DNA of 64,000 bases, from NCBI GenBank assembly GCA_964252035.1, contig OZ176204.1; one strand, given 5' to 3'. The notes beneath the pieces are model-generated. The model saw only the letters and a program-made list of their open reading frames with translations. It was not told where the DNA came from and did not search any database. A program made the position numbers and the translations under genes. Source of the DNA: Podarcis erhardii (Eukaryota). Below are positions 16,080 through 61,741 of this stretch, piece by piece (the first letter of the stretch is position 1; every line of letters begins with the position of its first letter).

Positions 16080-16960
16080 AGGGAGAACGGGGAGGGATGG
16101 GAAGCAACAACCGCCATCTTGCTTGAGGGCGGCAGTGGCTTAAAGCGTTTAGAAGTCATGCGGCGAGGTGGCCATTTTGGGTGCGGGCAAGCAGAAAGTG
16201 GGCGGGGAGTCGCCGACCAATCAGCGGAAAGGAAAAGCCAAAGCGCGGAGGGGGAGGCCCCTGTGGCTCGACTTCCTGCGTGGGCTTCGCGCTTTACACC
16301 GGGGTTGCGGTCCGGGCACCGCGCTTAGGAGGAGAACAGCCGCTTCCTCGCCGCTCTCATGCTGCGACCCGACGGCTGCCTCTTGCTGCTGCTGCCGCTG
16401 CTCTTCCTCCTGGCGCCGGGGCCCGCCGAGGGGAAGGCGGAGGCGGCGGCCGAGAGGCTGAGCCCCTACTTCGGCACCAAGTCCCGCTACGAGGAGCTGC
16501 ACCCGGAGCTCCTGCGGGACCCGCTGTCGCTCGGGCCGCCGCAGCCGGGCTTCCCGCTGCCGCCGGCTTCCTGCGCCCCGCTGCAGCTCGGCGCCGTCTT
16601 CCGCCACGGCACCCGCTTCCCGACGCGCAAGCAGATCCAGAAGCTGGGCCGCCTCCACGGACTCGTCCAGGGAAACGCCGGGAAATGCAACGCCAGCGCC
16701 GCCTCCCGCCTGGCGCGCTGGACCATGTGGCTCCGGCCGGACATGGACGGCAAGCTGGCCCCTCGGGGGCGCCGCGACATGGAGACGCTGGCCAGGCGCC
16801 TCGCCCGCCGCTTCCCCAGCCTCCTGGCCCGGAACCGACGCTTCGCCTTCGTCAGCAGCTCCAAGCACCGGTGCCTGGACAGCGCCGCCGCCTTCCGCGA
16901 AGGGCTCCGGCAGGCGCTCGACGGCCAGCGGCAGGGCACGTCCCAAAAGCATGGTGAGAG
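16080..16960 (+). promoter_or_regulatory. CpG island and promoter of MINPP1
   Basis: CpG-rich. GC box GGGCGGGG 16200-16207, CCAAT 16217-16221, ETS-like ACTTCCTG 16271-16278, YY1-like CCGCCATCTT 16111-16120 and GCCATTTT 16171-16178. Confidence 0.85.
16359..16953 (+). CDS. MINPP1: MINPP1 exon 1 (signal peptide and RHGxRxP histidine phosphatase catalytic motif)
   Basis: ATG at 16359 encodes MLRPDGCLLLLLPLLFLLAPGPAEG (signal peptide), then YFGTKSRYEE, FRHGTRFPT and LAPRGRRDMETLARRLARRFP. Donor CATG|GTGAGA at 16953/16954; 595 nt, phase 1. Confidence 0.97.
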
Positions 16961-21236: not shown

Positions 21237-22440
21237 GTACAGAGATAGCACTTACTACTAATAATACATGGCAGATATGCTTGCATAGGAACTAACATGA
21301 TACTCAGTATAGATTGGAAACGTTGGCATTTAATACATTTCAAGTATGAAATATATTGCAGTATATTTAAACATACAAATTTTAGTAATATTAAGGAAAT
21401 TTAAAATGAATAAATAAAGTGAAAATATTTTATGTAAATCACTTCAATGATTAAGCAATACACTAATTGTGTTAAATAAACAAATAACATAAGACACACT
21501 GTTGGTAACTGGATAGTACTGCGTATGCCAGCAGTTAAAATTAATCTTGAACCAAAGGCTCCTTGGGTCATATTCAGCGTTTGGGCCATTTGTTCCTCGC
21601 TCACGATATAAACAGTGCATACTGAGAACTGCAACCAAGAGATTGAAAAACCAATGTGATTGATGTCAGAGTAGGTTAAATTTACATGAGATTTTCATAT
21701 TAATTGTTACACAGAAGATAGGCATGTTGAAACACATGAAACATTCCAAGGTAGTGTATTCTGTTTATATGTAGGAACTGGGGGAGAGGAAGATCAGTCT
21801 CAGATTTTTGTACTGGGATTTCAGGTAGGGGCACTCAGAATGCTAATGAGCTGTAGCACAAAGTTGGGAGATAAGGAATAATGGATGTTCTAAAGGGCAC
21901 TGAGCAAAATCACTTCCTTAAGTTCCAAGTGCCCAGAAGTGAGGGGTGGTAGTTACTGGGAAGATAATCATAATTTTATGAACTAGGGAAAGTGCAGAGC
22001 TTGGTATTTGGAAAGGATAAAATAAGAGCAGTCCAGGATCATTCAGATGGTTGATTTTAGTGAGACCCTGAATAGTGTCAGGCAGGCCATTGCCTGTGGT
22101 GATGTGACTTTATGGTCCCTTGTTTCTAGAATCAAGCCCACTATATTCTTTGCGCAAACCATTTGTCCAGTTTACTTTTAGCAAGGTTTTATGTTAATAG
22201 AGGAATTCACAGAACCCTTGGTTTCAGAACCCTTTTGAGAAATTCTGTGCAAAATGCTTTATATAAAAAAGCATATGCCCCCTGTAGTTTACTTGAAGCA
22301 ACTACCTTTAACTCAGTGTTTGACAGAAGATTATTCAGTTTTAAGAGTGTGTATTTTGCAACGTGCTTGCTTTTGTGAATTTATATTCCACTTTAAAGCA
22401 ACTTACGACATTTAACAACCTTTTGCCCTTTCATTTTCAG

Positions 22441-22638
22441 CCACGACGACAGAAGGAATTGAAACCAACGACAAACTGATGAGGTTTTTTGATCTATGTG
22501 AAAGATTTGTTAAAGATATAGAAGACAATGATACGGCTATGCATGAGCTGGATGCCTTCAAGGAAGGTCCTGAGATGAAGGAAGTAGTGGGGAAAATCGC
22601 AAATACCTTGTGTCTACCAGTGAATGACTTAAACGCAG
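22441..22638 (+). CDS. MINPP1: MINPP1 exon 2
   Basis: Acceptor ttttcag|, donor GCAG|gtaatg; 198 nt. Encodes NDKLMRFFDLCERFVKDIEDNDTA...LCLPVNDLNA in frame with exon 1. Confidence 0.97.
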
Positions 22639-25611: not shown

Positions 25612-25709
25612 ATTTGGTTCAGGTGGCATTTTTCACTTGCTCATTTGAGCTGGCCATAAAAAACATTAGCTCCCCCTGGTGTTCGCTCTTCAGTGAAGAA
25701 GATGCCAAG
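25612..25709 (+). CDS. MINPP1: MINPP1 exon 3
   Basis: Acceptor acaacag|, donor AAG|gtaggt; 98 nt. Encodes [33 protein letters not shown]. Confidence 0.97.
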
Positions 25710-25859
25710 GTAGGTACTGTGTACACATCTGCAACCCCCTTAACTAAAGAAATGGAGAATTGAATGTTGCAATGTATTGTGAAAAAAACTATTATTCGGT
25801 CTCACAGAATTATATAGGACATAGCGGGTAGTATTCAGCCAAGAGTAGAGCTGCTGAAA

Positions 25860-26193
25860 GGGATGCGGGTGGCACTGTGGGTTAAACCACAGAGTCTAGG
25901 GCTTGCCGATCGGAAGGTCGGCGGTTCGAATCTCCACGATGGGGTGAGCTCCCATTGCTCTGTCCCTGCTCCTGCCAACCTAGATAATAGTAGATAAATA
26001 GGTACCGCTCCAGCGGGAAGGTAAACAGCATTTCTGTGTGCTGCTCTGGTTCGCCAGAAGCGGCTTAGACATGCTGGCCACATGACCCAGAAGCTGTACG
26101 CCGGCTCCCTCAGCCAATAAAACGAGATGAGCGCCACAACCCCAGAGTCGTCTGCGACTGGACCTAATGGTCAGGGGTCCCTTTACCTTTACC
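25860..26193 (+). mobile_element. Sauria SINE (Squam1), MINPP1 intron 3
   Basis: Full length; 14-bp TSD TAGAGCTGCTGAAA at 25846-25859 and 26194-26207. Confidence 0.96.
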
Positions 26194-26344
26194 TAGAGCT
26201 GCTGAAATTAATCAGCATTACTCAGCTAAGTCCATTAATTTCAGTGGTCTACCATGAGGAAAACTTAGTTGAATTCTAACCATGAGCTGAAATCTGGCAC
26301 TCACTTAACATGATTTAATTTGACCAAAACAGCCTACTGAGGCA

Positions 26345-27065
26345 CAATGAGAGGCACAAATACAAGATGGGTGACACCTGGCTTGAGAGCAGTACATGTG
26401 AAAAGGATCTAGGAGTCTTGGTTGACCACAAACTTGACATAAGCCAACAGTGTGACGCGGCAGCTAAAAAAGCCAATGCAATTCTGGGCTGCATCAATAG
26501 GAGTATAGCATCTAGATCAAGGGAAGTAATAGTGCCACTGTATTCTGCTCTGGTCAGACCTCACCTGGAGTACTGTGTCCAGTTCTGGGCACCACAGTTC
26601 AAGAAGGACACTGACAAACTGGAACGTGTCCAGAGGAGGGCAACCAAAATGGTCAAAGGCCTGGAAACGATGCCTTATGAGGAACGGCTAAGGGAGCTGG
26701 GCATGTTTAGCCTGGAGAAGAGGAGCTTAAGGGGTGATATGATAGCCATGTTCCAATATATAAAAGGATGTCACATAGAGGAGGGAGAAAGGTTGTTTTC
26801 TGCTGCTCCAGAGAAGCGGACACGGAGCAATGGTTCCAAACTACAAGAAAGAAGATTCCACCTAAACATTAGGAAGAACTTCCTGACAGTAAGAGCTGTT
26901 CGACAGTGGAATTTGCTGCCAAGGAGTGTGGTGGAGTCTCCTTCTTTGGAGGTCTTTAAGCAGAGGCTTGACAACCATATGTCAGGAGTGCTCTGATGGT
27001 GTTTCCTGCTTGGCAGGGGGTTGGACTCGATGGCCCTTGTGGTCTCTTCCAACTCTATGATTCAA
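26345..27065 (+). mobile_element. 5'-truncated CR1 LINE (ORF2 C-terminus and 3' UTR)
   Basis: Open 209-aa frame EKDLGV...KANAILGCI...[21 protein letters not shown]1 3' tail, 7-bp TSD TGAGGCA. Confidence 0.95.
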
Positions 27066-27682: not shown

Positions 27683-27816
27683 GTTCTTGAATATCTGAAT
27701 GATCTGAAGCAGTACTGGAAGAGAGCTTATGGGTATCCTATCAACAGCCGCTCCAGCTGCATTCTTATGCAGGATATCTTCAAACATTTGGACCAGGCTG
27801 TTACAGAGAGTAAAAG
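27683..27816 (+). CDS. MINPP1: MINPP1 exon 4 (not in the supplied ORF track)
   Basis: Acceptor atactag|, donor AAAG|gtaaaa; 134 nt. Encodes [44 protein letters not shown]; phases match exons 3 and 5. Confidence 0.96.
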
Positions 27817-29042: not shown

Positions 29043-30178
29043 GATTTAAATTCAATTGAACCGCTATGGTCACAGTTAGGTGTATGATCAGGTATTTTAT
29101 TTGGCTTGCAGCCCACTTGCGACTGATTTCCCACTTCAGTTTGGATCTGTGGCAAAACCTCCCTTTAGTTTGTTTCTGGATGCCTGGATATCAAACACAT
29201 GACTATAACTTTTTATATTCTAAAATGAGTGGAGAACATATGGTGTCCGTTCTTTAGTGAGCATTTATTTTGAATCATTTGCAGAAAGGCAGTATGACTT
29301 CCCATCAAACATTATCCCAGTTTTTAGGGCCCTTCCCTGTCACTTTCCTTACTGCAATAAGTCATTTTTATTTTTTTAAAAAATGGATTTGTTGCACCAG
29401 AGCACTTTAAATTGTGCAGAAGACCTAAATATCCATAAGCTGTTGAATCCCTCCTGAAAAATAGTGCCAGTCTGTAGGCAGCTGATTGTTAAACAACAAA
29501 AAGCTGCAGGAGATCCCAGTTATGAATTGCCTGCATCGTGTCTAGATTTGATATAATTAGGAGCTTTGTGAAACAGTGCTGTTCCTTTTCCTAACAGTTG
29601 ATGGCAGTATAAACAGAAGATTCTAATCTAAATTTTGAATAGGTTTCTCTTAACTAAGCGTAGTAAACTAAAGTACCTAATTGCCTCTTTCACCTACCAG
29701 CTTTTTCTGAATACTGATCATTGTTTATCCTGACAAGGGAGCAGAGGGCAGCTGTTGCCTTCTATGGAGGGTGAGTTGAGACACACATGGAAACAAAGTG
29801 ACTTGCCGTATGTGACACTTAGAATCGAGTAGATAAGTTTAACTTCCAGCCACTAATCCCCAATTAAAGCTGCAGCTAGATGAGATAACGTATGCAGAGC
29901 TAATGTAAAATAACAAGCCACTATTTATCTATCATTTTTCTATTAAAATGTACTTAGTATGGAATAGTAGAGTATTTAATCAGTGTTACTTGTACCAAGA
30001 GGCAAACAGTTCTTTCCCACAACATGAATTAATGTTTAAAAAACACTGTGAAATCATTGGAAGTCTTTAAACTCTGTTTTAATTTGGGGTAGAACTTAAT
30101 TTTCTTCCATGCGAAGGTAAGATTTTGAGAAGTGCCCATCTCTAGATATGCCCTATTCCACAATTCCATTCAGTATCA

Positions 30179-30181
<3 letters not shown>

Positions 30182-30219
<38 letters not shown>
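30182..30219. repeat. (AT)19 microsatellite at the 5' junction of the Penelope fragment
   Basis: Direct reading. Confidence 0.95.
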
Positions 30220-30221
<2 letters not shown>

Positions 30222-31101
30222 TTTCGTAGATTGGACAAACAAACAGACGAATAAATGCACGTATCGCAGAACACAAGAATGCCGTCAAAAAAGAAGAAAA
30301 AACTTCCTCTCTTTTCCAACACATGAAAGAAACAGGACACGAAATTAATTTTGCAGATTCCAAATTGCTCTTTAACACGGAACATCACCACAAGAGAATA
30401 ATCATGGAAGCCATCGAGATAGAGAAACACCCTCACAACATGAACAAGCGTGACGACACATCCCGCTTGCCAGACATCTGGAAATTAGCCCTCCCCACAA
30501 AAACTGACACCAGATCCAGAGGCACACAGAACGCCAACACCAATCAACCACACCAGACCCAAACCCAGACCCTCTCCACAGATGAATTACAGACACCATC
30601 CAGTAGCCAATCCATGGTGGCACCTCCGGATGCTGCACCCCCCTGCAATCCCTACACAGATCTGGCTGACACAAGCCACAAAACCACAGCTCGCCCCTAT
30701 ACACGAAGCCAAGCCAGAGCACAACTAAGTACAGTACAGCCATCTTCTCAGGAAAACTCTTCACAAAGTTCAAGAGGTCAAGACACAAAGACTTTAGCAA
30801 CTAATCCACACCTAATGACCCACCTAAGTGGTACTCAGGATATCACTCAAGAAATCACTCAAGATATCTCTCAAGTAATTAAGGAACAAAAGAAGAAAAG
30901 GCACACTAGCCTGGGAACTTCCTCTCTGCCCAGAACATTGGAGGCTATACACCACACCCCCTCTACAGTATTTATAGGAACTCAAACACTGAGATCCTGC
31001 TCTGTTCCAGTAACAAGAAGCCGAAAGCACCAGCCTGAAGATGACGAGTGAGACCTCGTCGAAACGTCGCCTAGACACCCCAACTTTTACACGGGAAGAC
31101 A
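30220..31101 (+). mobile_element. Penelope-like element 3' fragment (GIY-YIG endonuclease remnant plus pLTR region), cut by a gap
   Basis: (stop)IGQTNRRINARIAEHKNAVKK...LFQHMKETGHEINF...RIIMEAIEIEKHPHNMNKRD is typical of Penelope GIY-YIG domains; ends in a CTGAAGATG...GAAACGTC motif. Confidence 0.88.
31035..31068 (+). ncRNA. Minimal hammerhead-ribozyme-like motif in the Penelope element
   Basis: CUGAAGA-U-[GACGAG ugagac CUCGUC]-GAAA-CGUC. Perfect 6-bp stem II and palindromic ACGU stem III; stem I is weak in this copy. Confidence 0.6.
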
Positions 31102-31243
31102 NNNNNNNNNNNNNNNNNNNNNNNNNNNNNNNNNNNNNNNNNNNNNNNNNNNNNNNNNNNNNNNNNNNNNNNNNNNNNNNNNNNNNNNNNNNNNNNNNNN
31201 NNNNNNNNNNNNNNNNNNNNNNNNNNNNNNNNNNNNNNNNNNN
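31102..31243. other. Assembly gap (142 N)
   Basis: N run. Confidence 1.
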
Positions 31244-31354: not shown

Positions 31355-31562
31355 GACTAAGCTACATAGAAACATACAATTGTAGAGTTGGAAAGGACCC
31401 CAAGTGTCATCTAGTCTAGCCCCCTGCAATGCAGGAATCTCAAGCAAAGCATCCAAGGCAGATGCATAGTTGCTTCATAATTTCTTCCTCCTCACTTCGT
31501 AAATTGTTTCCCCCCCCCCTTAAGAATTTTAATTTGTATATGATATGTTTATTATAAGGTTA

Positions 31563-31925
31563 GGTAAAGGTAAAGGGACCCCTGACCATTAGGTTCAGTC
31601 GTGACTGACTCTGGGCTTGCACGCTCATCTCGCTCTATAGGCCGAGGGAGCTGGCGTTTGTCCACAGACAGCTTCCGGGTGATGTGGCCAGCATGACTAA
31701 GCCGCTTCTGGCGAACCGGAGCAGCACACGGAAACACCGTTTACCTTCCCACTGGAGCGGTCCCTATTTATCTACTTGCACATGACATGCTTTTGAACTG
31801 CTAGGTTGGCAGGAGCTGGGACCGAACAACAGGAGCTCACCCCGTCGCGGGGATTCGAACCGCCGACCTTCTGATTGGCAAGTCCTAGGCTCTGTGGTTT
31901 AACCCACAGCGCTACCCGCGTCACC
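31563..31925 (-). mobile_element. Sauria SINE (Squam1), MINPP1 intron 4
   Basis: 13-bp TSD TATTATAAGGTTA at 31550-31562 and 31926-31938. Confidence 0.96.
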
Positions 31926-32148
31926 TATTATAAGGTTAACCCTGCCTTAATAGAGTGACCATATGCAAAGGAAAGCACTGCTTCTGTGCTTTTTAACTGA
32001 GGGAGGAATTTCAGCAGGTGCAGCCTATCCTATGCATGTATAAGAGACACTTCGTGTGCTTAAATCTTCTTCTACACAACTTTTAAACATTCAGAAGTTC
32101 AATTGGGTTATTCAGCATTGTGATTCATTAATACCTTATGACCAAGGA

Positions 32149-32294
32149 NNNNNNNNNNNNNNNNNNNNNNNNNNNNNNNNNNNNNNNNNNNNNNNNNNNN
32201 NNNNNNNNNNNNNNNNNNNNNNNNNNNNNNNNNNNNNNNNNNNNNNNNNNNNNNNNNNNNNNNNNNNNNNNNNNNNNNNNNNNNNNNNNNNNNN
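32149..32294. other. Assembly gap (146 N)
   Basis: N run. Confidence 1.
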
Positions 32295-35195: not shown

Positions 35196-37549
35196 TAGGC
35201 TATGCATCAGAGAAACCTGAATGTAAGAAGCATGTACTAAGAAGCACTAGCCACATGGCAAAGACTATAGGAAGCAATGACTTTGGTAAAGGAGGCATCT
35301 CATCAAACAGCTAAAATGTTCATCCTGACCAAAGACTAAATTCACTTGTGTTGGTTTTCTTAATAAAATAAAATAAAAGAAAGAAAAAAGAAGGAAATTT
35401 GGTATTTGTTGCTTGCATTGGGTCAGTAATTGTGGGAAAGGGGAAATTGTATACCTTCATTTCCTTATGTAAAAACAGTTTTTAGTCTGATTTCTTGGGC
35501 TTGCTAAATCACAGTATTGTGGGGAATTTCTTCTGTACTACCCCACCATAAGCACAAAAATATGTATATGAATTCTTGGAGAAATGAGTAATCTATCTTA
35601 TTTCCTTAAAGCTTTCCGGTTATAAAGAACTGAGGATATAACATAACTTATGCAGTACTTTATTATGTCAAAGTGTCATTTTTAAACTTCAGAAGCAGGA
35701 TACTTCAAAGCATTCTTCTCTAAATGGGACAGGTCAAACAAGTAGTTGCATTTTATTTCCTTTTTGATGTTACAGGTTAACATGAAGTACCAAGAACTTT
35801 CCTCTGTTGAATTAAAAACTGTATTTTCGCTTTGGCTTGTTGCTTGGCCTTCGTATGCTTGTCATAGCTGCTGCTAATAATTCTAAGGCTTGAAAGTTTT
35901 TACATTTAATTGTGATGAAAACCTGGATTTATGAACTGGGCTTTGTTTATTCCATTCACAAAACACAACATATGTCAAGCATGGCATCCCCTAATGCAAA
36001 TTATAGTTACATCTGTATGTTCCTTTATAAAGATTATGTTACAAGCTTCTAAAGGTAGGGACAGCATAATTTGATAAGTATCTTATCAAGCTTACTACTG
36101 AGAAGCTTGGTTTAGCTGGAACTCTAAACATACTTACTCATTTCTTAAAATGTATACACCGCTTGATGCGGGGGGCACACCTCAAAGCAGTTTACAAAAA
36201 GATAAAACTGAGAAAAATCCACAACCTTACTTCAAAGCATACAAAGAATAAAAATACTGGAGTTGACATTCTGCTTTACTATAACATGAGCACATGGAAT
36301 CATGAGTAGCATGGGATCTTGGACCTTTAAATTTTCTAAAAAATATATTAACTATAAATAGTAGTGATGATAATAGTTTTGGGGAGAAGAAACTAGACAG
36401 CTGCTTTTGCATTACTTTTTTATATTGTACCATCACCGCGGTACATTAGAGTTACATAAGCAACATAGACGCTGTAGGAACTTACAATCTGAAATGAAAC
36501 AGGCATTTGGTCAGTTGACTGTCAAGGTGGAGGAGTGGGCAGAGATAAAATGAGAAATAGGAGTCAAAATATAGGTTGAGCAGGGGCAGAGAGAGGCCTT
36601 GAAGGCCAGGCTTTCTGTTGACTATAGAAGATCATGGGAAGTCAGGGAAGGAAACAAATGATGTGGTCAGATCAGTGAGAAATGAGAATAATTTTGGTTT
36701 TGGTTTCTCGATATACGGGAGAGGACTAAGATGTGAAAGAGGAAGAGGCCAGAGGGCTTACATAAACCAGAGTTGTAGCCACGAGGACAGAGAGGAACAG
36801 TTGGATTTTTAGTATGTTGTACAGGGAGAAAGGTCCATAACATGGCCGTTCTAAACAGGTGGGTAGCAGTGGAAAGAAACTAATCCAAGAGAAGCTGTGA
36901 CACTTTGCCTGGACAATAGGATGAATGAAGTCGTCGCCATTCATGTGCCAAAAAAATCACTACAGAATGAGCACATCATCTGTAGATGAGTTGCGAGTTG
37001 CACATTCTCTGCTTTGCCATTCATTCTCTTTAGAGAATTGATCTCTTCCACTGCACCCCAATATCCACATGATCTCAGCTGTAACTGCAGGTCATCTCTT
37101 AACCGGGAATGAGATTGAACTCTGTAATCTTCTAGTTCTTTTCTTTAAAATAACATGTTGTTGTTGTTGTTGTTTTAAAAATGATTTCTTGACCAAGAGT
37201 TTTTTAGCAGTCAAATGCCATTCCTACGATTCAGACCACCAAAAGTAAAACAACTCTATTACAGTAGCATAGTTTGCTAATTCTTGTAACTATACAGTAG
37301 TTGTGCCTCACTGCTTGGAACTCCACTACATTAGTAAAAAAACACCGTTTTGAATGCGTTATAAACATGCAACACCAGATGGTGTTGGAGAGTGAAAAAA
37401 AATTATGTGATTTTCCATAGCGTTTCTTTTTCTTTTGTTATAACGATTTAATTTCTGACTTATTTATAGCGTGTTTTCCCCCGAATGTGTAGATCCACCC
37501 TTAGATTCATCTGACTAACCATCTTTTGCTTGGCTTTTAAACTTTCTAG

Positions 37550-37961
37550 TTCGAAGCCTATTTCCTCTCCCGTGATCCTCCAGTTTGGACATGCAGAAAC
37601 CCTTCAACCTCTCCTTGCTCTCATGGGCTACTTCAAAGACGAAGAGCCTCTTAAAGCTAACAACTACCACAGGCAGATGCACCGGAAATTTCGTAGTGGC
37701 CGCATTGTCCCTTATGCCGCAAACCTGTTGTTTGTGCTTTATCACTGTGATCAAGCCGCAACTCCAAAGGAAGAGTACAAGATCCAGATACTGCTCAACG
37801 AGAAGCTGCTGCAATTTCCACACACGGGAGAAACAGTTGCTTTGTACACCGACCTGAAAAACCACTATAATGAAGCCCTCCAAAATTGTCACTTTTCTGA
37901 AGTGTGCGACATGCCAAAAAATACTACTGAAGGTGATCTGCATATAAAGGGGACAAAGTAG
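37550..37961 (+). CDS. MINPP1: MINPP1 exon 5 (last coding exon; HAET motif)
   Basis: Acceptor actttctag|T; encodes [24 protein letters not shown]...[20 protein letters not shown]...[18 protein letters not shown], stop TAG 37959-37961. Spliced CDS 595+198+98+134+412=1437 nt (478 aa). Confidence 0.96.
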
Positions 37962-38820
37962 AGGAAGCGTTTTTTGTGTGTGGAAGTGTTTGATAAAATG
38001 TAGCTCTTTTGCTTTTGCTACTTTTTAGGAAGATGTACCATCACACTTTAAAAAAACAACTTCATAAACTGGTTTCTCAAATTCAAAAACAAAATTACAA
38101 AAACAAAGATACAGGACATCTCAAAACATTCAAACAAACCTCTGAAGCTGTTTCTGGGGGGAAAAGCTGCCTTTTTTAGGATCAAGAATGATCTAGGTGT
38201 AACCACATGGTATTTGGCATACAGTTTACTTCATAGCTATGCCAGTTATTTAATGTGAATAGTTTGGAAGTTATTGTGGATCTCAATTGCTGCTTCACTG
38301 GAATATTCACTTGTGAATACAGCCTCTTATCTACAAACATCTCCTAAGTACAAACATCTCTTATATAAGATTCCAGGTGGTTTTCATGGTTATGTTTTAC
38401 AAAAATAATTGGTTTTTGCCAAGTATTTTGGAGACCTTGCATAAAAGGTTGCATCTAGTTAAGTTATACTCAAAATAGTCCACTGAAATAATGGACTTTA
38501 CTAATTACTGTTTTTAATGGGTCTGCTCTGAATATGACCTATTTGCGCACAACCCCAAAATTGTAAAGCAATAGGAGAATACTAGTGCTGCTTAATCTAT
38601 TTTCATAATTCAGTCTTTTTGGTGTTTTGTTTTGGTAGCTTTTGCCCAGCAATAATGTGGCTCTGCGGCTTCAAAAAGAGGCGTCGTACGTTTGCCAATT
38701 GGGCAGATGCCAATCTGTGACGGGCATTCAGGTACTCTATAATAATAACATTGAAGAGAAGGGGGTCACTGCTTTGAGTTCAGTTTCAAAACGAACAAAA
38801 TTACTCAGCTAGAGAGAGCA

Positions 38821-39061
38821 CAGTTGTACCTTGGAAGTCAAACGGAATCCATTCTGGTAGTCCGTTCGACTTCCAGAATATTTGGAAACCAAAGCATGGC
38901 TTCTGATTGGCTGCAGGAAGCTCCTGCAGCCAATCAGAAGCCCCGTCAGATGTTCAGCTTCCAAAAATAGTCTGCAAACCGGAATAGTCACTTCCTGGTT
39001 TGCGCTGTTCGGGAGCCAAAATGTTCGAGAACTTAGCTGTTCGGAAACCAAGGTACAACTG
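38821..39061. mobile_element. Tigger-like MITE in the putative MINPP1 3' UTR
   Basis: TIR CAGTTGTACCTTGG / CCAAGGTACAACTG; internal hairpin CTTCTGATTGGCTGCAGGA...TCCTGCAGCCAATCAGAAG. Confidence 0.88.
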
Positions 39062-39439
39062 TAGTACATAGTGTACATTTTAAAGAGGAAATCCATGATG
39101 CTTTAATATGGCTTCCCCCTTTAAATCCATTCTTGGGTGTGGTTTCCATATGTAAACTGTAAAGAGACTGCTTTTCCCAACTAAATATATTCAATCATGC
39201 ATTGAAGCAGGAATTAGTTTTTCAGAATTGAAAATAGTATTATCACCTCAGTCCTGGCTTTTTTTTGGTCTGTTTCTCTGTAGCTTTTTTTCATTCCTAT
39301 GAACCATTCCTTGAAACCGGAGTGTTGTTTTTTTAGTGGGGCACTATCTTGGATACAGTATCGCTAAACACTTTGAAGATTTGGGTTTTGGTTTTTACCA
39401 AGAGTTGCTGCTAAAAAACCCATGCTTTAAAGAAAAATT

Positions 39440-39445
39440 AATAAA
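39440..39445 (+). terminator. Candidate MINPP1 polyadenylation signal AATAAA
   Basis: First canonical AATAAA I found after the stop codon, with GT-rich sequence downstream; implies a 3' UTR of about 1.5 kb. No transcript support. Confidence 0.45.
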
Positions 39446-40513
39446 GAACAACTATCCATAAAAGAGACTGCATCGTGGTTATACAGTGTGCAGCGTATCT
39501 CTGTGTTAAATTGCTGGTCTATAACGTGAGATGCCATACACCACCATTTTGAAGGGAGCTCTTTCTAAAGGGAAGGTTATACTGACAATTTGGGGTGGGG
39601 TGGGGAGGGGAGGTTCTTAATTGGGAGTGTCAGGTGAACAAACCTGTAAGGATAGGTCTGTTGACACTGAAGTCTTGTCTATCCAATTCCACAGGAGAAA
39701 TGAAATGTAGCATATCACATGATAAAGCTGCTTTCATACTGGATGAATATAAGTATTTGTGAGCAATGTGGTTGCTAAGGTGTGTGCTTACAGTGGAGCT
39801 TTTTGTGTGCCTATAATTCAGTTTATGGTTTCAAACTCCTGCATATCATATAATGGTTTGGTTGCTGTATAACAAAGGAAGGAAAACTTCACGATAGTAC
39901 AAGCTGTTTAAACACCTCAGATGTTGTCAGATAGCTAAATCACGCCATTCCAAGAAAAAAAATTAAAGAAAAAAGTAATTATTGGACTGATTTGTCTCAT
40001 TTGTTAAATTCAGGATAGATGTTTAGGCTTAAGGCACAAAATGCGCCATACAGACCTAAAATGTGGGGAGTAGTCATTTCAAGTGGAAGAAGAGCAAACT
40101 AGAGAGGCTAGTGAACTTTTCTCAGCCAGCTGCTTTTCCCCCCCTGTCTGGGCTTGGAGACTGGAAATGAGCTCAGTTTCGGGAAGGTGTAGTGGTGACA
40201 GGGCTGGGAAAGGGTTTAGCACCTCCCATTGCAGCCTCTGCTTCTCTACTTGAAGTTGTATTCTATACATATATACCTGTATGTGCACACACATATACAC
40301 ACACAATTTTATACCTGTTCAGCAACCCATGTCCTAAGATAAGAATCAACAGGAAGTGATGAGTCATAGAACAGGGCTATGTAGATAAAAGGTGGAATAA
40401 TGAAGAGATGCAAAAAATGCACGCAATTCCCGATGAATAACTCTACCAACTAGAGGCATCATGCAGCTTTCCTTTCTACTTGTGGCAGGGCAGGGAGATG
40501 GAAGAACTATATA

Positions 40514-40772
40514 CCGTATTTTTCGCTCTATAAGACGCACCAGACCACAAGACGCACCTAGTTTTTGGAGGAGGAAAATAAGAAAAAAAATATTCTGAAT
40601 CTCAGAAGCCAGAACAGCAAAAGGGATCGCTGCGCAGTGAAAGCAGCAATCCCTCTTGCTGTTCTGGCTTCTGGGATAGCTGTGAAGCCTGCATTCACTC
40701 CATAAGACGCGCACACATTTCCCCTTACTTTTTAGGAGGGAAAAAGGGAGTCTTCTAGAGCAAAAAATATAG
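40514..40772. mobile_element. Tc1/mariner MITE (inverted copy of 4992-5250)
   Basis: TA TSD; near-identical translations of the two copies appear in the ORF track. Confidence 0.9.
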
Positions 40773-41394
40773 TATTTCATTACTTGAAAACTAGGGTGAA
40801 AGAATGGCGCCCCTTTCTGTATGTTAAATAAAACAATTTAATTATTGTTCTGCACTTTCAGGTTGGCAGTCAGCCTGACCTACCTCACAGGGTCGTTTTG
40901 TGGGGATTATATGAGGAGGGGGGGGAACAATTTATGCTACTTTACGCTTCTTGGAGAATAAAGCTGAAGTATATAAACAATAATACTAAGGTAGCTCCAT
41001 TCACTGCAGTGGGGCCAGCAAGTTTGCTATTTGAAGAAATAATGATGACTCGTACCTGATGCCCTACTTAAATGTGGTATGAGGTTATGGTAGCACACCT
41101 GCTTTCTAAATTGCCACTCCTAAGCGCTTGTTAAAATAGTGATTTGAGCGGCTACTTTTAAAGCATTGAAGATAAAACGGGGACATGATTTGCAATCAAT
41201 TAAAAATATTTGCAGAAGGTGGGGAAATGTATTTTAGTGCAGGAACAGGCTCTGGCTTCTGTAATTTACAAAGTGGGTCAAATGCTTCTGTCCTTGAGCT
41301 TTAAGCTGGCAGCCCTTGGATCTTTCATTCAGCTGTTCATTGGTAGTCCTAGCATGGGTCATAACACTTAAGATATCTCCATATTTTAAGACGA

Positions 41395-41602: not shown

Positions 41603-43480
41603 TATAATGTTAAATGTAGTCAAATGTCCAGGAAAATGCAGTTTCATGTTTACAGAGCAGCTTTGCAATGGTACCCCAAAATAGTTACTACCTACAAAGT
41701 AACAATTGCATTGTATTTGCCTTATGTAAGCTTTTTCTTTCTCTTCTTGGCAGCAAGCCATTAGTCCTCAACAACTTTCAATGAAGTGATGGCAAGTGGA
41801 TTAAAAAGTATTGTTTACATTGCTTCAAAGAAATTAAAACTCCCTGCAATTAAGCTTTTTTTTTTTAAGGTAAAACTGTCTTCTTGAATGGTTACACAAT
41901 TTACCCATATGAGTTTTCTACCTTCCTGCTGATCAGGAAGCTGACACAGCAGAATTGAAAACTCAGATCATTTGTTAGAACAGGGATGGAGGAGGGAGAG
42001 AGAGAGACAGAAAAAGGTTCAGACTTAAATTGTTCTGTGTACAGTCCGAACCCAATAATGGTAATACACTGCAATGCACAGTTTTGGATACAGAGAAATA
42101 AGAGCATAGAGAAATTATGCAGACAGATGGAGGTGCTAAGAGTCACATTGATGGCTCACTGGAGAGAAATTTCCTTCTCACAAGGCAGTCAGTTTGTACA
42201 CACATGCAAAAATATCTTAGCAATCCATTGCCCTTCACAAACACCCTTCTTAAGAAACAAAATAACAAAATGGACTTTTTTAGTGGCTCCCTAATTGTGG
42301 CTCCATCCCTGCTCTAGAAAGATTTTCTGCATTTTCAACCATAGGATGGATTCTGGCATCATGCAAATATTTTGGTGAGTCATAACGTGGGTAAATTTAT
42401 TACAAATTCTATAAAGAAATCTACTTGCACTTATACTACCTTATCATGAGGAGACAATGCAATGCTTGCTCACATAAACGTTCTCTGCTGCTCGCTTTCA
42501 TTTGCTGTTCGCATATCGCAGCATCCGTAAATGAATCTCATTTCTCATTTGGGGTAGCTAGTGCCGGTACTTGGAATACGATTTGCCTAATAGATGATCT
42601 GTAAGATCTTTGGGTGTACTTCCCAATCTTTGACTAAAAGCACGGCAACCAGTTGCCTGACTTCTTGAAGACTGGCCTTAGACTGCAGCAGCAATCTGTA
42701 TGTTTTAAAATGCAAGAGTAAACATGTTGATGCAAAGCCAGTCCTCCTCATCTCCATAGGCCTTGCATGCATGCTTAGACTTAGAGGACCTGAGTGACAC
42801 GTAACTTTTTGAAACAGGCAATACTGATTATTTGCATGTTGTGGCAAAGATATTTCTAATCAGGCAAATGGAGAGAAAGGGAAGTAGAGGGCTGTCTAGC
42901 TGCAGAAGCAGCAAAGGTATTTAAGCCTGTATAACCAGCTTTGCAGTCAGTTGGGTTTTTTGCTTGTTTGTTCTTTGCAGCTCTTAGGAGGGAAAAGGTG
43001 TGGGTTTGTTTCCGTAGTGAAAAGCCACAGCTTCTCCATGACTCCTTTTTCAGCCTCTCTTCACCACACCCTCCCTTGCATTGATGAAGCAGTCCCAAGT
43101 GAAGGTGGAATAATGCACACACATAAAAGCAAGTTGCATACGTGTTAATACATCACGTGAACAGAGGCTTTTGCACACACAGCGCACACAGCGTTATAGA
43201 TTTTAGGACCTTCCTAAAACATTAATTACTAGCAGGCTTGTGTCTGGCATTGCTTGGAAGTCCTAAGAAAAAAAGAAAAATCAGTACAATTTTGAAAGGG
43301 TTCAGTCCACCATCTTGATTCAACATGGAATCCAATTGTATCCAAACAGGTAAAAACCCTGCTCCTTGATCTCAGGAACCACCACATAAAAAAGTGATTA
43401 TGATATCTTAAGAGGTGTCCAAGTGCACAGTGGACCAATGAACAATTTCCCAGAATAGATACTAGATATAGCTGAATTTA

Positions 43481-43828
43481 GGGACGCGGGTGGCACTGTG
43501 GGTTAACCCACAGAGCCTAGGACTTGCCGATCAGAAAGTCTGCAGTTCGAATCCCCGTGACGGGGTGAGCTCCCATTGCTTGGTCCCTGCTCCTACCAAC
43601 CTAGCAGTTCGAAAGCATGTCAAAGTGCAAGTAGATAAATAGGTACCGCTCCAGTGGGAAGGTAAACGGCGTTTCTGTGCGCTGCTCTGATTCACCAGAA
43701 GCGGCTTAGTCATGCTGGCCACATAACCCGGAAGCTGTACGCTGGCTACCCCGGCCGATAAAGCGAGATGAGCGCCGCAACCCCAGAGTCGGTCACGACT
43801 GGACCTAATGGTCAGGGGTCCCTTTACC
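43481..43828 (+). mobile_element. Sauria SINE (Squam1)
   Basis: Starts GGGACGCGGGTGGC; TSD TATAGCTGAATT at 43467-43478 and 43829-43840. Confidence 0.96.
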
Positions 43829-44046
43829 TATAGCTGAATTAAAAGCTTTGAATTGATCTTACTCCCATCTTCTTGGAGTAGAGTTCCCCTAATACCTATA
43901 TACACAATGTTTTTACCAGCAATAACAACAAAAGAGAGAAGAGGGCGATAGTATCTCTTCCATATGACAGTCTTCTGTGAATGGTATAGTATACTTATGC
44001 ATATAAATCATTGCGGGAAGTCACGTTTCTTATCATCATCTGAGCA

Positions 44047-47219: not shown

Positions 47220-47577
47220 ACGCGGGTGGCGCTGTGGGTTAAACCACAGAGCCTAGGACTTGCCGGTCAGAAGGTTGGTGGTTCGAATCCCCGTGACGGG
47301 GTGAGCTCCCGTTGTTCAGTCCCAGCTCCTGCCCATCTAGCAGTTTGAAAGCACATCAAAGTGCAAGTAGATAAATAGGTACTGCTTTGGCGGGAAGGTA
47401 AACAGCGTTTCCATGCGCTGCTCTGGTTTGCCAGAAGCAGCTTAGTCATGCTGGCCACATGACCTGGAAGCTGTACGCCGGCTGCCTCAGCCAATAAAGC
47501 AAGATGAACACTGCAACCCCAGAGTCTGTCACGACTGGACCTAATGGTCAGGGGTCCCTTTACCTTTACCTTTTACC
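47220..47577 (+). mobile_element. Sauria SINE (Squam1)
   Basis: Matches the other copies along its length; ACCTTT tail; no clear TSD. Confidence 0.93.
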
Positions 47578-50447
47578 AAACTATTTGCAAAACTAAAATG
47601 ATTCATGTCTTCTTAGCTTCCTTTCCCTGATGGTGTCACCCAGAACTTGTTCCACACAAAAACCATTTCTAAATCACATTAGTTCCTTCTTGCATTACAG
47701 TCTCCTCCTCCAGTCTTACTGTCATCTGATGATTTTATTATTTTTAAAGGTGCTGGTACTGCGTACCCTTGAGTAACCCCCCCCCCCCAAAAGCACTGTG
47801 TCATAATTTTCGGTGATAAACTGCCCATGGCCTTCACTTTGTCTCTTGGACTCCTCCCTTGTGTTATTTAGTTCATTCTCCCTTTCAGCCAGTTTTGCCT
47901 TGCCCTGTCCAGGAATACCCCACACATTGAAGTTACCTCTCCCCCCTCTTTTCTTTTAGATTCCTCATGAAAACACACCTTTTCCAGTAAGCCTATAAAG
48001 AAAACACTCACATTACAGTAGCAAGACACATTGCTTCAACTCATCAGTGCATAAAATTAACGTTGCTGTTGCATTTTAGTTTTTTTTGGGGGGGGCCTTG
48101 TTTGTTTGTTACTGGTGTTGTGTAATCAACCTGCAACCAATAAAACTGCATGAGGTGGGATACTCCTTAATTAATTGTGCGTACTTTTATGTGGGAGGAA
48201 GTGGAACACCTCAGGGTCTACTTCTGAGTAAATGTGCACAGGATCGGTCTGCTTAGTAATAATTAATTTGAAGACTAACACAGCTGTTGGGAAACTAGTA
48301 ATTCCCATTTCTGAACACTTGCCAGAGGCAAGATTAGTTTCGCATTTGTTTGAAATCCAACACATCTTTGTGTTAGCAAAAGCTTCAAATGCATTCCTCT
48401 TTGTTGCTTGAGGTCAATGTGAAGGCAAGAAGGAAGCAAAATGTTCTCAACTAGATCATTTTTCAGCTGCTTGGGACCTCTACACAGTAATGCCCCTGCC
48501 TTTTTAATCCTTTGGCAAAAGGATTTATTCTGAGGCTGTGTATATGTTACCGCTTACTCTGGCTCCAGAGCGCTCCCACCTCTGCTGTTTTGAAGAAGAC
48601 ATTAGCCGCAATGCAAAGGTGTTGTGTAGTTTCTTGAGAAATGGCCCCATCTGTTGCTCTTTCGCTCTTACCATCTTCCATCCAATTAGCAAACGGAAGT
48701 CATGGTTAAACTGGTGTGTACATTTTGACAGCGCATGCAGATGACAGCTTTGATGAATTGGAATTTGGCACTGGGGAACGAATCAGGTAATGGGCACCAG
48801 GTGAAGACATCCATGCCTCCTCTCTAGTGTGAAGAGCAACATAAAAAGTGACTTGAAACGCTGGGGTGGCGGGGGGGGGGGGTAGTGGCAGGAATAACCT
48901 CACTGCTTTTTGAGCTGCTGGTATGTACATAGCCTGAGTTTAGATGTGAGTGGCAAATAGCTGAATCAGCCATTTACACAACTCTGTTCAGAGTCCTGAC
49001 AAAAAAACAAAACTGTGAGCAAATAACTACCTGCAGAAAATGTACCTTGATCAGGCTGTGAACTTTGTGTGATGTTAGATAACTAGCTTAAAGGCAACTA
49101 CGAAAAGGGGATAATGGGAATTATCTGAAACTGTGCTCCCTCCATTCTGTTTAACTGAATCCCTTCAAATTACCTTGCTGGTTTTGAGTGCTTCTAGGTG
49201 AAGATCCCCCCCACCCCGAAGAACTCAAGCATACTTTATGAACACACCCAATACTTGCCAAGATTAGCAGAGTCAAAATAACTGCCACGATCCAAAAGAG
49301 GAGTTGCACAGGGCTTGTTGCATAACAGACACACATTCATAGAACTTTTGTACTGCTTTTCCGCCCCTCTCTATTCAGAGAACTTCTTGCCAAACATCTT
49401 AGCTGTGTGAAAGCTTGCTGTTTTCTTAGCTTGGTTAACTAGGGGAAAACATTAACATTGATGCAAAATTAAAGCCAAAAGTTGTATTAACTTTGCAATC
49501 CTATGCAATGTTCACACGGCAGCAAGTCATATTGTGTTGAAAAGGGCTTTCTCCCTAGTTAGTATGTTTATATTGAAGGCTAACCAGATAAATTCTAGAT
49601 ATTTTTTCTTCAGCATGCGCTGTGTGAATAATATTTCTTTTTGTTCCACTTCTGCTTAACATGATTCATCTAGAGCACAGAGAAAGAGAGAGGTTAAAGA
49701 TGGCAATGAAATGTAATTTACCAGCACTGTGTAACCACAACATTTTATTATAATTTGAGCAACAGAAAGCCTCATACATTTTTCAAGCAAAGCTAGAACA
49801 AACATATGCTAGGACGCCATATCTTGAAATGGTGTGGATGTACTTTTAAATTAATCACTGGGTCATTTCCAGATAAGATTCCTCAAAAGCACAAAGACAG
49901 ATTTTGAGTGCCGTACAAAATGTTACACCCAGAATACGATGATAGTTTCACAAAACCATTGGCCCAAGACAGCGATTACATTTGATGTATGTAGGCCTGG
50001 TCTTTCAGACCTGCATAATCCACTTTGACTCTCTTTTGGGGTGGGGGGGGCAGAATTGCGTATCCCTTTTCACACTATGTCTCTGGGAATTCTCTCCATC
50101 CCCATTCATCCTTCATTCTCCAACTTGGTGCCCTCCAGGTATTTTAGTGAATGACAAATATCACTCATTGGCCATTCTGGCTGGCATCAATGAGAATTGT
50201 AATGTGAAACATCTAAAAGGGCACCAGGTTAAGGAAGGCTAGTTTAGAATCTAAAGTTTTAGGGCAGGGGTAGCCAGTGTTGTGCTGCAGAGCAACATAG
50301 GAAGTGACATTATACTGAGCCGACACTGACTGGCAGCAGCTTTCTGGGATTTCAGAAAGTGGCATTCCCAGCCCTGCCTTCAGTTGCTGCTGATTAAACC
50401 TGAGACCTTCTGCCATTGATCTACTGCCCTTTCCCACAGCTGATGTG

Positions 50448-56612: not shown

Positions 56613-56952
56613 GTGGCGCTGTGGGTTAAACCACAGAGCCTAGGACTTGCCAATCAGAAGGGCAGCAGTTCGAATCCCCGTGATGGGGTGAGCTCCCGTT
56701 GCTCGGTCCCTGCTCCTGCCAACCTAGCAGTTCGAAAGCACGTCAAAGTGCAAGTAGATAAATAGGTATCGCTCCGGTGGGAAGGTAAATGGCGTTTCCG
56801 TGCGCTGCTCTGGTTTGCCAGAAGCGGCTTAGTCATGCTGGCCACATGACCCAGAAGCTGTAAGCCGGCTCCCTCGGCCAATAAAGCGAGATGAGCGCCG
56901 CAACCCCAGAGTCGGTCACGACTGGACCTGGTCAGGGGTCACCTTTACCTTT
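56613..56952 (+). mobile_element. Sauria SINE (Squam1)
   Basis: Matches the other copies; slightly 5'-truncated. Confidence 0.93.
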
Positions 56953-58170
56953 ATGGAGGAGAGGACTTTTCATGGCACTACTGCCTGAAGCTGCCACGGT
57001 GTTGCCTTTGTGCCTGAAAGCTGTGTGTGTGTCTTTTAAATGTGTTGGTAGCACTGCCACCTCACGCCCTGCCTGTAGGGTTGAAACACACCGTTGGGTC
57101 GTTATTCTTACTATGATCCATCGGCCCATGTCTCCACCTTACATCTTCTTCTTTCTAGAACACATGTGAAGCACTCTTATGCCACTTTAGCAGCCACAGA
57201 GAATCCTGGGAAATGTAGTTTCCGTGGGTGCTGGGAACTGTAGTTCTCTAAGGTCAGCAGCCTTTGACAAACCGCTGATTCTCCATGACTGTTGTGTCAT
57301 CAGAGTGCTTTAAAGGTGTGCTGAGGATGTGTCTGGCTGTAATAGGCTATGATAACAACTGCCGAGGACCAGAAGGAAGTGCTATAAACACCTCCAAGTA
57401 TCCCTAATATATCGCGCCTTTACTTGCCTGCGTGGCTGTGTCACTGCAAGCTGCTTTGGGCTGGGAAGCAGGGCTTATATAGAAAAACAAAATAGGCAGC
57501 CACTTTCCCAGCCCAGAATCACCCAGAGTGTCCTTTGACATACAGTACTTTGCTTTTTTTCCTCTCAGGCTTCCCTAAAGCAGCGTTTAAGGCGAGGGAA
57601 AGCCCGGGGTTGTTGTTGCTTTTGTTCGTTGCACAAAGGTGAGATTCTTGGCGAGGGTTGGACCTCGCCTCCGTCCAGCACCAGCCTGCAAACCTATAGC
57701 CAGGGAAACGCGTGGGTGAGACGGTGTCCCCTATCCGAGCAAGAACACACGTTTTTGTTAAGCGAGCGCCGTCTGAGGCGATTTAAACAATAAAAAAGCG
57801 CGGGTCCTAACTGGCGCGGGGGGGGGGGGAGGACGCAGGCACGAGAGGAGAACAGTTCTCCTGTGAATATCCTCTCGCGGAGCCCTTTCCCCTCACAGGG
57901 AAGGGGGAAAAACCCCGCAATCTTCCCGCCTGTGGCAGCCGGGAGCAGAGCAAGCAGCGAGGGGAGGAGCCAGAGGAGGGCGCGGGGTGTGAGCCGTGGG
58001 CTGGAAAGGCGGTCCGGGGAAGTGCTACGTGTCTCCTCGGCCGCTTTTATACCTACTCCCTTCCCCTCGCAGCTTCTCAGCAGCCCGCGGGAGCCAGCCG
58101 CTTGCCTTCCTGCCCGCCACCCCACCCCGTCACTGCTGCCAGGAGCCGAGGGAGCCGCGAAGCCGGCGAC

Positions 58171-58197
58171 ATGTCCGACACCAAGAAGCAAAGGATG
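58171..58197 (+). CDS. PAPSS2: Probable PAPSS2 (PAPS synthase 2) first coding exon, MSDTKKQRM
   Basis: GGCGACATG Kozak context in a CpG island, 9 codons, donor ATG|gtaggt. Resembles the human PAPSS2 N-terminus MSGIKKQKT (recalled) and fits the conserved MINPP1-PAPSS2-ATAD1-PTEN order. Exon 2 not found in the window. Confidence 0.75.
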
Positions 58198-58233
58198 GTA
58201 GGTGCTGCCTCAGCAGTTCTCTCGCGGCAGTAG

Positions 58234-58257
58234 CAGCAGCAGCAGCAGCAGCAGCAG
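58234..58257. repeat. (CAG)8 repeat just inside the putative PAPSS2 intron 1
   Basis: Direct reading; 36 nt after the donor site. Confidence 0.92.
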
Positions 58258-58910
58258 CGGCATAGTGCCGGCGCCCTGCGGGAGGCGCCTTTTTTTGTTT
58301 TTTAAGCATCTGCCCCGCCACCCTGCGCTCGCGCTCTTCTTTCTCTCTGCTGCAGCCCCCTTCTCCGCTGGGCCAGAGGCAGTCGCGCCAGGGCGCAGCT
58401 GGAAGATGCCGTCCTGGTCCGCGCAGCAGCCCCCGGGTCTACCACAGCGGGGCAGGGGAAGTCCTCTCCCTTTACTAGTCCTCTTTGCGCGCCGCCAGAA
58501 AGGTGATTTTGGTCAGAGAGACCCTCCTTAGAGGAGGAGGAGGTAGGTTGCGTTAGCATCCTGTGGCTAAGAGTTAAACTGGCACTTTGTGGCTGAGGTG
58601 GGTTGGGGTCATAGCTGTCAACGTTTCCCTTTTTTTTAAGGGAAATTCCCTTATTCCGAATAGGATTCCTCGCAAGAAAAGGGAAAAGTTGACAGCTATG
58701 GTTGGGGTGTCTTCCCAAACCCCATGGTTATGGCCATGAATGCTGAGCAAACTTTTGAGTCCGCTAGGCTGGTGTGTGAGTGTGAGAGGACATTGAGGTC
58801 ATGATGCCCGTGTCTTGGCAAATATCCTGTTTTTGTTGTAGAGTCGTGGCTGCGTTCAGACGCATGGTACCCTTAAAGCACCTTTGAAGCACATTCATGG
58901 ATGCTTTAGC

Positions 58911-61157: not shown

Positions 61158-61391
61158 CCCACAATTACTGACCCAATGCAAGCAACAAATACCAAATTTC
61201 CTTCTTTCCTTTCTTTATTTTATTAAGAAAACCAACACAAGTGAATTTAGTCTTTGGTCAGGATGAACATTTTAGCTGTTTGATGAGATGCCTCCTTTAC
61301 CAAAGTCATTGCTTCCTATAGTCTTCTGCCATGTGGCTAGTGCTTCTTATCACATGCTTCTTACATTCAGGTTTCTCTGATGCATAGCCTA
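61158..61391 (-). repeat. Inverted duplicate of 35196-35436
   Basis: Manual alignment shows near identity apart from about 3 substitutions or indels and an A-rich tract length difference. Confidence 0.95.
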
Positions 61392-61741
61392 AAGGTAAAG
61401 GTACCCCTGACCATTAGGTCCAGTTGTGGATGACTCTGGGGTTGTGGCGCTCATCTCGCTTTACTGGCCAAGGGAGCTGGCGTACAGCTTCCGGGTCATG
61501 TGGCCAGCATGACTAAGCCACTTCTGGCGAACCAGAGCAGCGTACGGAAACGCCGTTTACCTTTCCACCGGATCGGTACCTATTTATCTACTTGCACTTT
61601 GACATGCTTTTGAACTGCTCAGTTGGCAGGAGCAGGGACCGAGCAACAGGAGTTCACCCCGTCACGGGGATTCGAACTGCAGACCTTCTGATCAGCAAGT
61701 CCTAAGCTCTGTGGTTTAACCCACAGCGCCACCCTCATCCC
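61392..61741 (-). mobile_element. Sauria SINE (Squam1), full length, carrying a copy of the 35196-35436 flank
   Basis: Matches the other copies; the 3' flank 61158-61391 is the reverse complement of 35196-35436. Confidence 0.95.

Follow-up and report, generated by a model that had tools for sequence, protein, structure and literature searches.

Apart from MINPP1, no animal phytase or InsP5/InsP6 3-phosphatase is known. The enzyme is confined to the ER lumen, apart from its cytosolic substrates, and this separation has been a long-standing paradox. Soluble luminal proteins are retrieved by the KDEL receptor, and one that lacks a KDEL-type tail exits the ER by bulk flow. The described vertebrate enzymes (human SDEL, avian xDEL; HiPER1/MIPP) are ER-luminal histidine acid phosphatases of branch 2. 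According to a 2025 review, in which reptiles are unmentioned, a KDEL-like end is found in eukaryotic MINPP1s, as SDEL in human and as ADEL in birds, and the HAE tripeptide, which replaces the HD proton donor, is the hallmark of MINPP (PMC12580751).

Several forms of the enzyme have been described in which this end is missing or damaged. An engineered avian MINPP without the signal is reportedly secreted. In human MINPP1 the E486K variant, which turns SDEL into SDKL, is associated with pontocerebellar hypoplasia; its activity is kept, and it does not rescue the growth of MINPP1-null cells. That MINPP without its retention signal is still active is stated in the part of one paper that cites Cho et al. 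(2006) (PMC7705663). Human MINPP1 isoform 2, which is without SDEL, has been found in exosomes (PMC8890658).

Here, we report on a 64-kb stretch of genomic DNA from Podarcis erhardii (the window), which holds a single, intact, expressed MINPP1 gene with no KDEL-type C-terminal tetrapeptide. The MINPP1 proteins of squamates are already public; a literature search found no paper noting a missing retention signal in squamate MINPP1. Our overall reading, to which we give a probability of roughly 0.7, is that an otherwise intact MINPP1 has had its KDEL-type motif destroyed twice among squamates and would consequently be exported from the ER.

Structure of the MINPP1 gene

The gene lies on the plus strand in five coding exons that are colinear with those of orthologues. 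The coding part of exon 1 (16359-16953, with the start codon and a donor G/GTGAGA at 16953/16954), exon 3 (25612-25709) and exon 4 (27683-27816) were placed by tblastn and splice sites, as was exon 2 (22441-22638), with an acceptor ...ttttcag and a donor GCAG/gtaatg. Exon 5, the last coding exon, occupies 37550-37961 and runs from GHAET near its start to the stop TAG at 37959-37961. It is followed by a 3'UTR of about 2 kb (37962-39985), delimited by RNA depth, with poly(A) signals AATAAA at 39440 and ATTAAA at 39962. The product of exon 1 begins with a hydrophobic putative signal peptide (start MLRPDGCLLLLLPLLFLLAPGPAEG); the hydrophobic N-terminal stretch LLLLLPLLFLLAPGPAEG is visible in it and conserved across squamate models. 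The catalytic heptapeptide RHGTRFP (RHGxRxP) is encoded at 16602-16622, and GHAET near the start of exon 5 is the HAE proton-donor motif. Both the exon 1 peptide (51.8 bits) and the exon 5 peptide (35.4 bits) match Pfam His_Phos_2 (PF00328) above its gathering cut-off of 23.6. An earlier reading made from the letters of the window (the sequence-only reading) had described an intact MINPP1 with RHGTRFP and HAET, and the five exons, the Pfam matches and the motifs bear it out.

In these respects the locus resembles the described vertebrate MINPP1: five exons, RHGxRxP, HAE, PF00328, a putative signal peptide and a conserved Cys-rich C-terminal domain as far as the N-x-T sequon are shared. In a single-gene tree, where the window protein was represented by its P. 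raffonei orthologue (P0159, 97-98% identical over the exons), squamate MINPP1 sequences form one clade (100/99) within sauropsids. Across the whole MINPP1 locus the window and P. raffonei are 92-98% identical in DNA. A PDB search with the last exon gave a distant bacterial histidine acid phosphatase (7r5y) as its sole match and nothing on the tail, and an Rfam scan of 37000-41000 gave no match.

Coding end, reads and transcripts

In the region 37907-37961 the coding end reads GAA GTG TGC GAC ATG CCA AAA AAT ACT ACT GAA GGT GAT CTG CAT ATA AAG GGG ACA AAG TAG. The C-terminal tail (37920-37958, placed by DNA alignments) keeps the N-x-T sequon and finishes in KGTK, an end that fits neither the PROSITE-type KDEL-like pattern [KRHQSA]-[DENQ]-E-L nor xDEL. 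Ahead of the in-frame TAG, at 37945-37947, there is a TAA in another frame (CTG cata TAA). A di-lysine retrieval signal in ...KGTK was also considered and ruled out, as the spacing is wrong and the tail is luminal; KKXX and KXKXX motifs work on the cytosolic tails of membrane proteins.

Such an end might be an artefact, either an assembly error or a minor last exon accompanying a main transcript that ends in xDEL. The 9.7-kb last intron contains two N runs (31102-31243 and 32149-32294) that could hide sequence, a Podarcis isoform with another end is held in databases, and the P. raffonei gene range extends 10 kb beyond the stop. Four public runs were compared over 37000-40500. One contig (37448-38808) is identical to the window; it possibly comes from the source sample and thus is not independent confirmation. 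Contigs of DNA from a second species, and RNA contigs and stranded raw reads from a third, show no indel over 37900-37961 and give the same frame and stop; their sole differences from the window are C>T at 37907 (synonymous) and C>T at 37941 (His to Tyr). Stranded RNA depth begins sharply at 37548, continues unbroken through the stop to about 39950, thus into a 2-kb UTR, and declines past about 39580 and about 39925. In 88 RNA reads the consensus of the loose ends ahead of 37548 matches exactly the terminal 30 bases of exon 4 at its donor (27785-27814), which shows that the exon 4-exon 5 splice is in use; no well-supported junction leads out of exon 5. On the plus strand of the whole window there is no [DE]EL-stop; a wider scan for [DENQ]-E-L-stop gave one match, at 21845 in intron 1, where about one is expected by chance and which is misplaced for a C-terminus. 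The alternative Podarcis ends are also non-DEL, the reported isoform junction has no GT donor in the window, and the 27 squamate representatives without DEL described below come from independent assemblies. The artefact reading is largely refuted, and we find it scarcely credible. The genuine absence of a KDEL-type end, an out-of-frame TAA 4 nt past CTG and the lack of a downstream DEL-stop exon, all noted in the sequence-only reading, survive this comparison, and no consensus error was seen over the coding end.

The same extended tail is shared by all five annotated lacertid proteins (P. raffonei, P. muralis, P. lilfordi, Zootoca and Lacerta agilis), with the consensus end ...NT[TS][EQ]G[DG]LY[IV]K[GVA][TS]K. 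At 37941 the window has His (CAT), as against Tyr (TAT) in both compared species and in these five lacertids; on this comparison the His is a substitution private to the species of the window, or an allele of it.

For Podarcis MINPP1, the databases list isoforms with an exon some 10 kb further downstream, none of them ending in DEL. P. muralis A0A670IBI4 ends ...EEYKIQ/IPHENTPFPGSL, and the Podarcis isoform model P0313 also ends IPHENTPFPGSL. The exon lies at 30116-30442 of the P. raffonei locus, with its counterpart at about 48000-48250 of the window. At the isoform junction, 37787/37788, the window reads CAG/AT and not a GT donor, and RNA depth is steady there.

Distribution of the retention motif

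Orthologues were gathered through word searches with the full-length proteins of Thamnophis (P0003) and Hemicordylus (P0172). A search with the exon 5 peptide returned MINPP relatives including those of a hemichordate, a brachiopod and fishes, most of which end in DEL, EEL, TEL or AEL. Among 162 vertebrate MINPP1 cluster representatives, 128 have an xDEL end; the other 34 are 27 squamates, three caecilians (xHEL) and four isolated partial or isoform models (Echinops, Pteronotus X1, Galbula partial and Trichechus isoform 2). DEL is kept in tuatara, turtles, gharial, birds and mammals.

The DEL-less squamates include geckos (NATTGA, NATTRA, NSTACA, NTTAFF, NTTAGA), lacertids, a worm lizard (Rhineura, NTAEVG), anguimorphs (Elgaria, NTTSVV; Varanus, NATRVN), iguanians (Pogona, NTTWID and NTSRSG; Phrynocephalus, NTTRVD and NPSRTG; Phrynosoma, NAATAG; Anolis, LTKTG and LTKPG) and snakes (NGTSINSL, NGTTLNSL, NGTSIKLL, NGTNIKGTS, IDEKCPRINS). 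Within the squamate clade, from a sampling that left out teiids, skinks proper, dibamids and xantusiids, only two sequences keep DEL, namely Hemicordylus capensis (NTTTIDEL) and the Logan transcript SRR12657023 (P0163; NSTTIDEL), which group together in the single-gene tree with support 96/93. Compared across squamates, birds and mammals, the loss is therefore concentrated in squamates, as the counts show; the proposal of the sequence-only reading that it belongs to the lineage of the window alone was too narrow, since the DEL end is absent in nearly every sampled squamate.

Some agamids have two MINPP1 genes, both DEL-less: Phrynocephalus forsythii (P0162 and P0252, on one contig) and Pogona vitticeps (P0168 and P0271). 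The copies pair within each genus in the tree, and copy b evolves faster, with RHGTRDP in Pogona.

Loss of the motif

The coding ends of ten squamate loci, one turtle and the Logan transcript were aligned codon by codon. Hemicordylus and the Logan transcript read GAT GAA TTG TAA (D E L stop), the ancestral state. In Rhineura (GGT TAA TTG TAA), Elgaria (GTT TGA TTG TAA), Varanus (AAT TGA TTG TAA) and Phrynosoma (GGT TAA TTA TGA) the Glu codon has become a premature stop, and the relic Leu codon and the old stop persist directly 3' of it. Counted in Hemicordylus, Rhineura and Elgaria, the distance from the Asp codon to a downstream AGTAGAG is 21 nt each time, and this equal spacing indicates a length-neutral nonsense substitution (GAA to TAA or TGA). 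On the accepted species tree, the most parsimonious history has this change happening once, in the common ancestor of Lacertoidea and Toxicofera. In the snake Liasis (AAT TCA TTA TAA) the premature stop is now Ser and the old stop is used again, giving INSL.

The geckos carry a different lesion. Sphaerodactylus reads TTT TGA ACT GTG AAA and Paroedura GCT TGA ACT AGG, each 1 nt longer, and removal of one T from Sphaerodactylus gives GAA CTG TGA (E L stop). From the aligned DNA, geckos have gained one T (+1) immediately ahead of a Glu codon that is itself intact, as against a length-neutral substitution elsewhere, and this gain thus represents a second, independent event.

It could be argued instead that DEL was lost once, at the base of Squamata, and regained through back-mutation in the cordylid lineage, and the step from TAA to GAA is indeed a single one; the fewest changes on the single-gene tree also number two. 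However, the gecko insertion and the non-gecko substitution differ and so cannot be one event, and Asp-Glu-Leu-stop would have to have been restored exactly, which leaves this history very improbable. In the same tree the scincoid pair falls inside the stop-bearing group with weak support (84/79), and an AU test does not reject a position of scincoids outside the stop-bearing clade (p = 0.199). With two separate losses as the preferred reading, the tail would have drifted in each lineage afterwards. Judged from the aligned ends, the loss of DEL is ancient and predates the lacertid extension by far.

The lacertid extension

Unlike vertebrate MINPP1, the lacertid protein has no KDEL-like tetrapeptide and ends in seven residues of translated former 3'UTR, LHIKGTK in the window (L-[H/Y]-I-K-G-T-K). 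In the window GAT at 37935-37937 aligns with the Asp codon of DEL, and the distance from there to AGTAGAG is 22 nt (GAT CTG CAT ATA AAG GGG ACA A/AGTAGAG) versus 21 in Rhineura and Hemicordylus. The TAA at 37945-37947 on the plus strand is the relic ancestral stop, put out of frame by the one base by which the window exceeds those two species; its counterparts in the alignment are the stop of Hemicordylus and the relic stops in Rhineura, Elgaria and Varanus. The AGTAGAG motif itself, at 37957-37963 on the same strand, is common to the 3'UTRs of most of the non-gecko squamates compared (Hemicordylus, Rhineura, Elgaria and Phrynosoma), and its TAG is the lacertid stop; it is AGTAAAG in Varanus and missing in snakes.

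One gained base together with substitutions accounts for the disappearance of the premature stop, the out-of-frame position of the relic TAA and the use of the TAG in AGTAGAG. A small insertion that displaced the ancestral stop had been suggested from the window sequence, and the alignment agrees with it as a 1-base gain, with the addition that the earlier nonsense mutation had already made that stop irrelevant when the base was gained. The companion suggestion, that EGDL is simply a decayed SDEL, has to be given up: CTG at 37938-37940 occupies the former Glu codon, later the premature stop, and does not descend from the Leu codon of DEL. A parallel frameshift into this same relic stretch seems to underlie the elapid tails (...IKGTS), to judge from elapid proteins and python DNA.

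Constraint on the enzyme and its probable export

Every full-length squamate model keeps RHGxRxP, GHAET and the hydrophobic N-terminal signal; Phrynocephalus model a, truncated at its N-terminus, is without the RHG region. Measured over 107 codons, starting at GHAET and running as far as the last Cys, dN/dS lies at 0.11-0.27 for pairs of DEL-less squamates and at 0.17 for the window against P. raffonei. On these comparisons the catalytic domain is under purifying selection and the tail past the N-x-T sequon varies freely.

The putative signal peptide would bring lacertid MINPP1 into the secretory pathway. Because the KDEL receptor would have no motif to bind, this soluble luminal enzyme should leave the ER by bulk flow, and it might serve as an InsP6/InsP5 phosphatase that is secreted or located beyond the ER. 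On the strength of the coding ends, MINPP1 is probably exported from squamate cells.

The tail may have been lost while the enzyme stayed in the ER by KDEL-independent means (a resident partner, thiol-mediated retention or slow export), so that the loss was neutral and the localisation is as in mammals. Other ER proteins are known to be retained independently of KDEL. Once DEL was gone, the tail has been free to vary, as expected of a neutral region, and the catalytic domain is constrained much as before. In addition, the human enzyme is partly secreted despite its DEL, and the motif may accordingly be a modest determinant. The comparative record, however, argues that the motif matters: xDEL is present in 128 of 128 complete non-squamate tetrapod representatives (with xHEL in caecilians), and related ends occur in the hemichordate and the brachiopod. 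Moreover, E486K in the human SDEL is a disease allele although the activity is kept, with no growth rescue, and two independent lesions at one codon would not be expected by chance for a mildly useful motif. We consider neutral loss with unchanged localisation unlikely, but the most serious challenge to export as the preferred reading.

Venom proteomes bear on the same question. In Naja atra venom MINPP1 was present in seven of seven pools at 0.018-0.072%, and the ER residents PDIA6, a glucose-regulated protein and ERp44 were found in only two to three of the seven (PMC12390202), so that MINPP1 is a more regular component of cobra venom than abundant ER residents are, which speaks against unchanged retention. 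In Hydrophis curtus venom MINPP1 was listed at 0.05%, with no ER residents listed (PMC6356285). These are trace levels, from snakes, in studies designed for other ends. Human MINPP1 with SDEL has likewise been found in plasma and culture medium (PMC11633940, PMC7705663), and extracellular presence thus does not prove that retention was lost.

Comparison with known forms and significance

The squamate enzyme resembles the engineered signal-less avian MINPP and human E486K in that the same motif is lost or damaged; activity is preserved in those two, and the conserved motifs suggest that it would be in squamates. The squamate nonsense mutation strikes the very codon altered in E486K. Unlike these laboratory and pathogenic forms, the squamate state is fixed, roughly clade-wide and evidently tolerated. 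Human isoform 2 also has no retention signal and is found outside the ER, where we would place the squamate enzyme from its sequence, but isoform 2 is a minor splice form with much of the C-terminal domain missing, whereas squamates make the full-length protein as their main product. Among vertebrate MINPPs, shark minpp1b also does not end in DEL; this paralogue has what is probably a membrane or anchor tail, in contrast to the truncated or hydrophilic squamate end.

That shark sequence, Carcharodon carcharias minpp1b (P0011; same cluster, Cetorhinus maximus P0335), ends in the long hydrophobic tail HSSFHFIFFLFLLLLFTVYY, which suggests a membrane-anchored paralogue.

We tentatively propose, at somewhat short of even odds, that squamates lost ER retrieval twice, in independent events on one codon, and that an otherwise conserved InsP6/InsP5 phosphatase has been exported constitutively ever since, a span of well over 100 million years, with retrieval retained by cordylids (perhaps other scincoids too), tuatara and all other amniotes. 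If this is true, ER residence is dispensable for the essential role of MINPP1, and squamates are a natural experiment on the control of cytosolic inositol phosphates by a luminal enzyme and on the reason why E486K causes disease. The need for ER retention and an extracellular role (clearance of plasma InsP6, phytate digestion, or a function in venom or other secretions) become testable questions, with DEL-bearing and DEL-less sister lineages available for comparison. The distribution also corrects the textbook statement that a KDEL-like end is universal in eukaryotic MINPP1s.

Other features of the window

A very high-copy, SINE-like interspersed repeat of about 350 bp lies within the MINPP1 3'UTR at 38755-39105. 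Further copies are found at about 25859-26188, 31562-31927, 43480-43829, 47222-47571, 56613-56950 and 61390-61741, and summed contig depth over the repeat reached up to 1.8 million in a DNA run. Two long intronic ORFs on the plus strand, 26319-26993 (225 aa) and 30230-31048 (273 aa, adjoining the N run at 31102), resemble transposable-element remnants. Finally, a GC-rich block at 57700-58700, with long ORFs on both strands, may be a CpG island or the first exon of a neighbouring gene.
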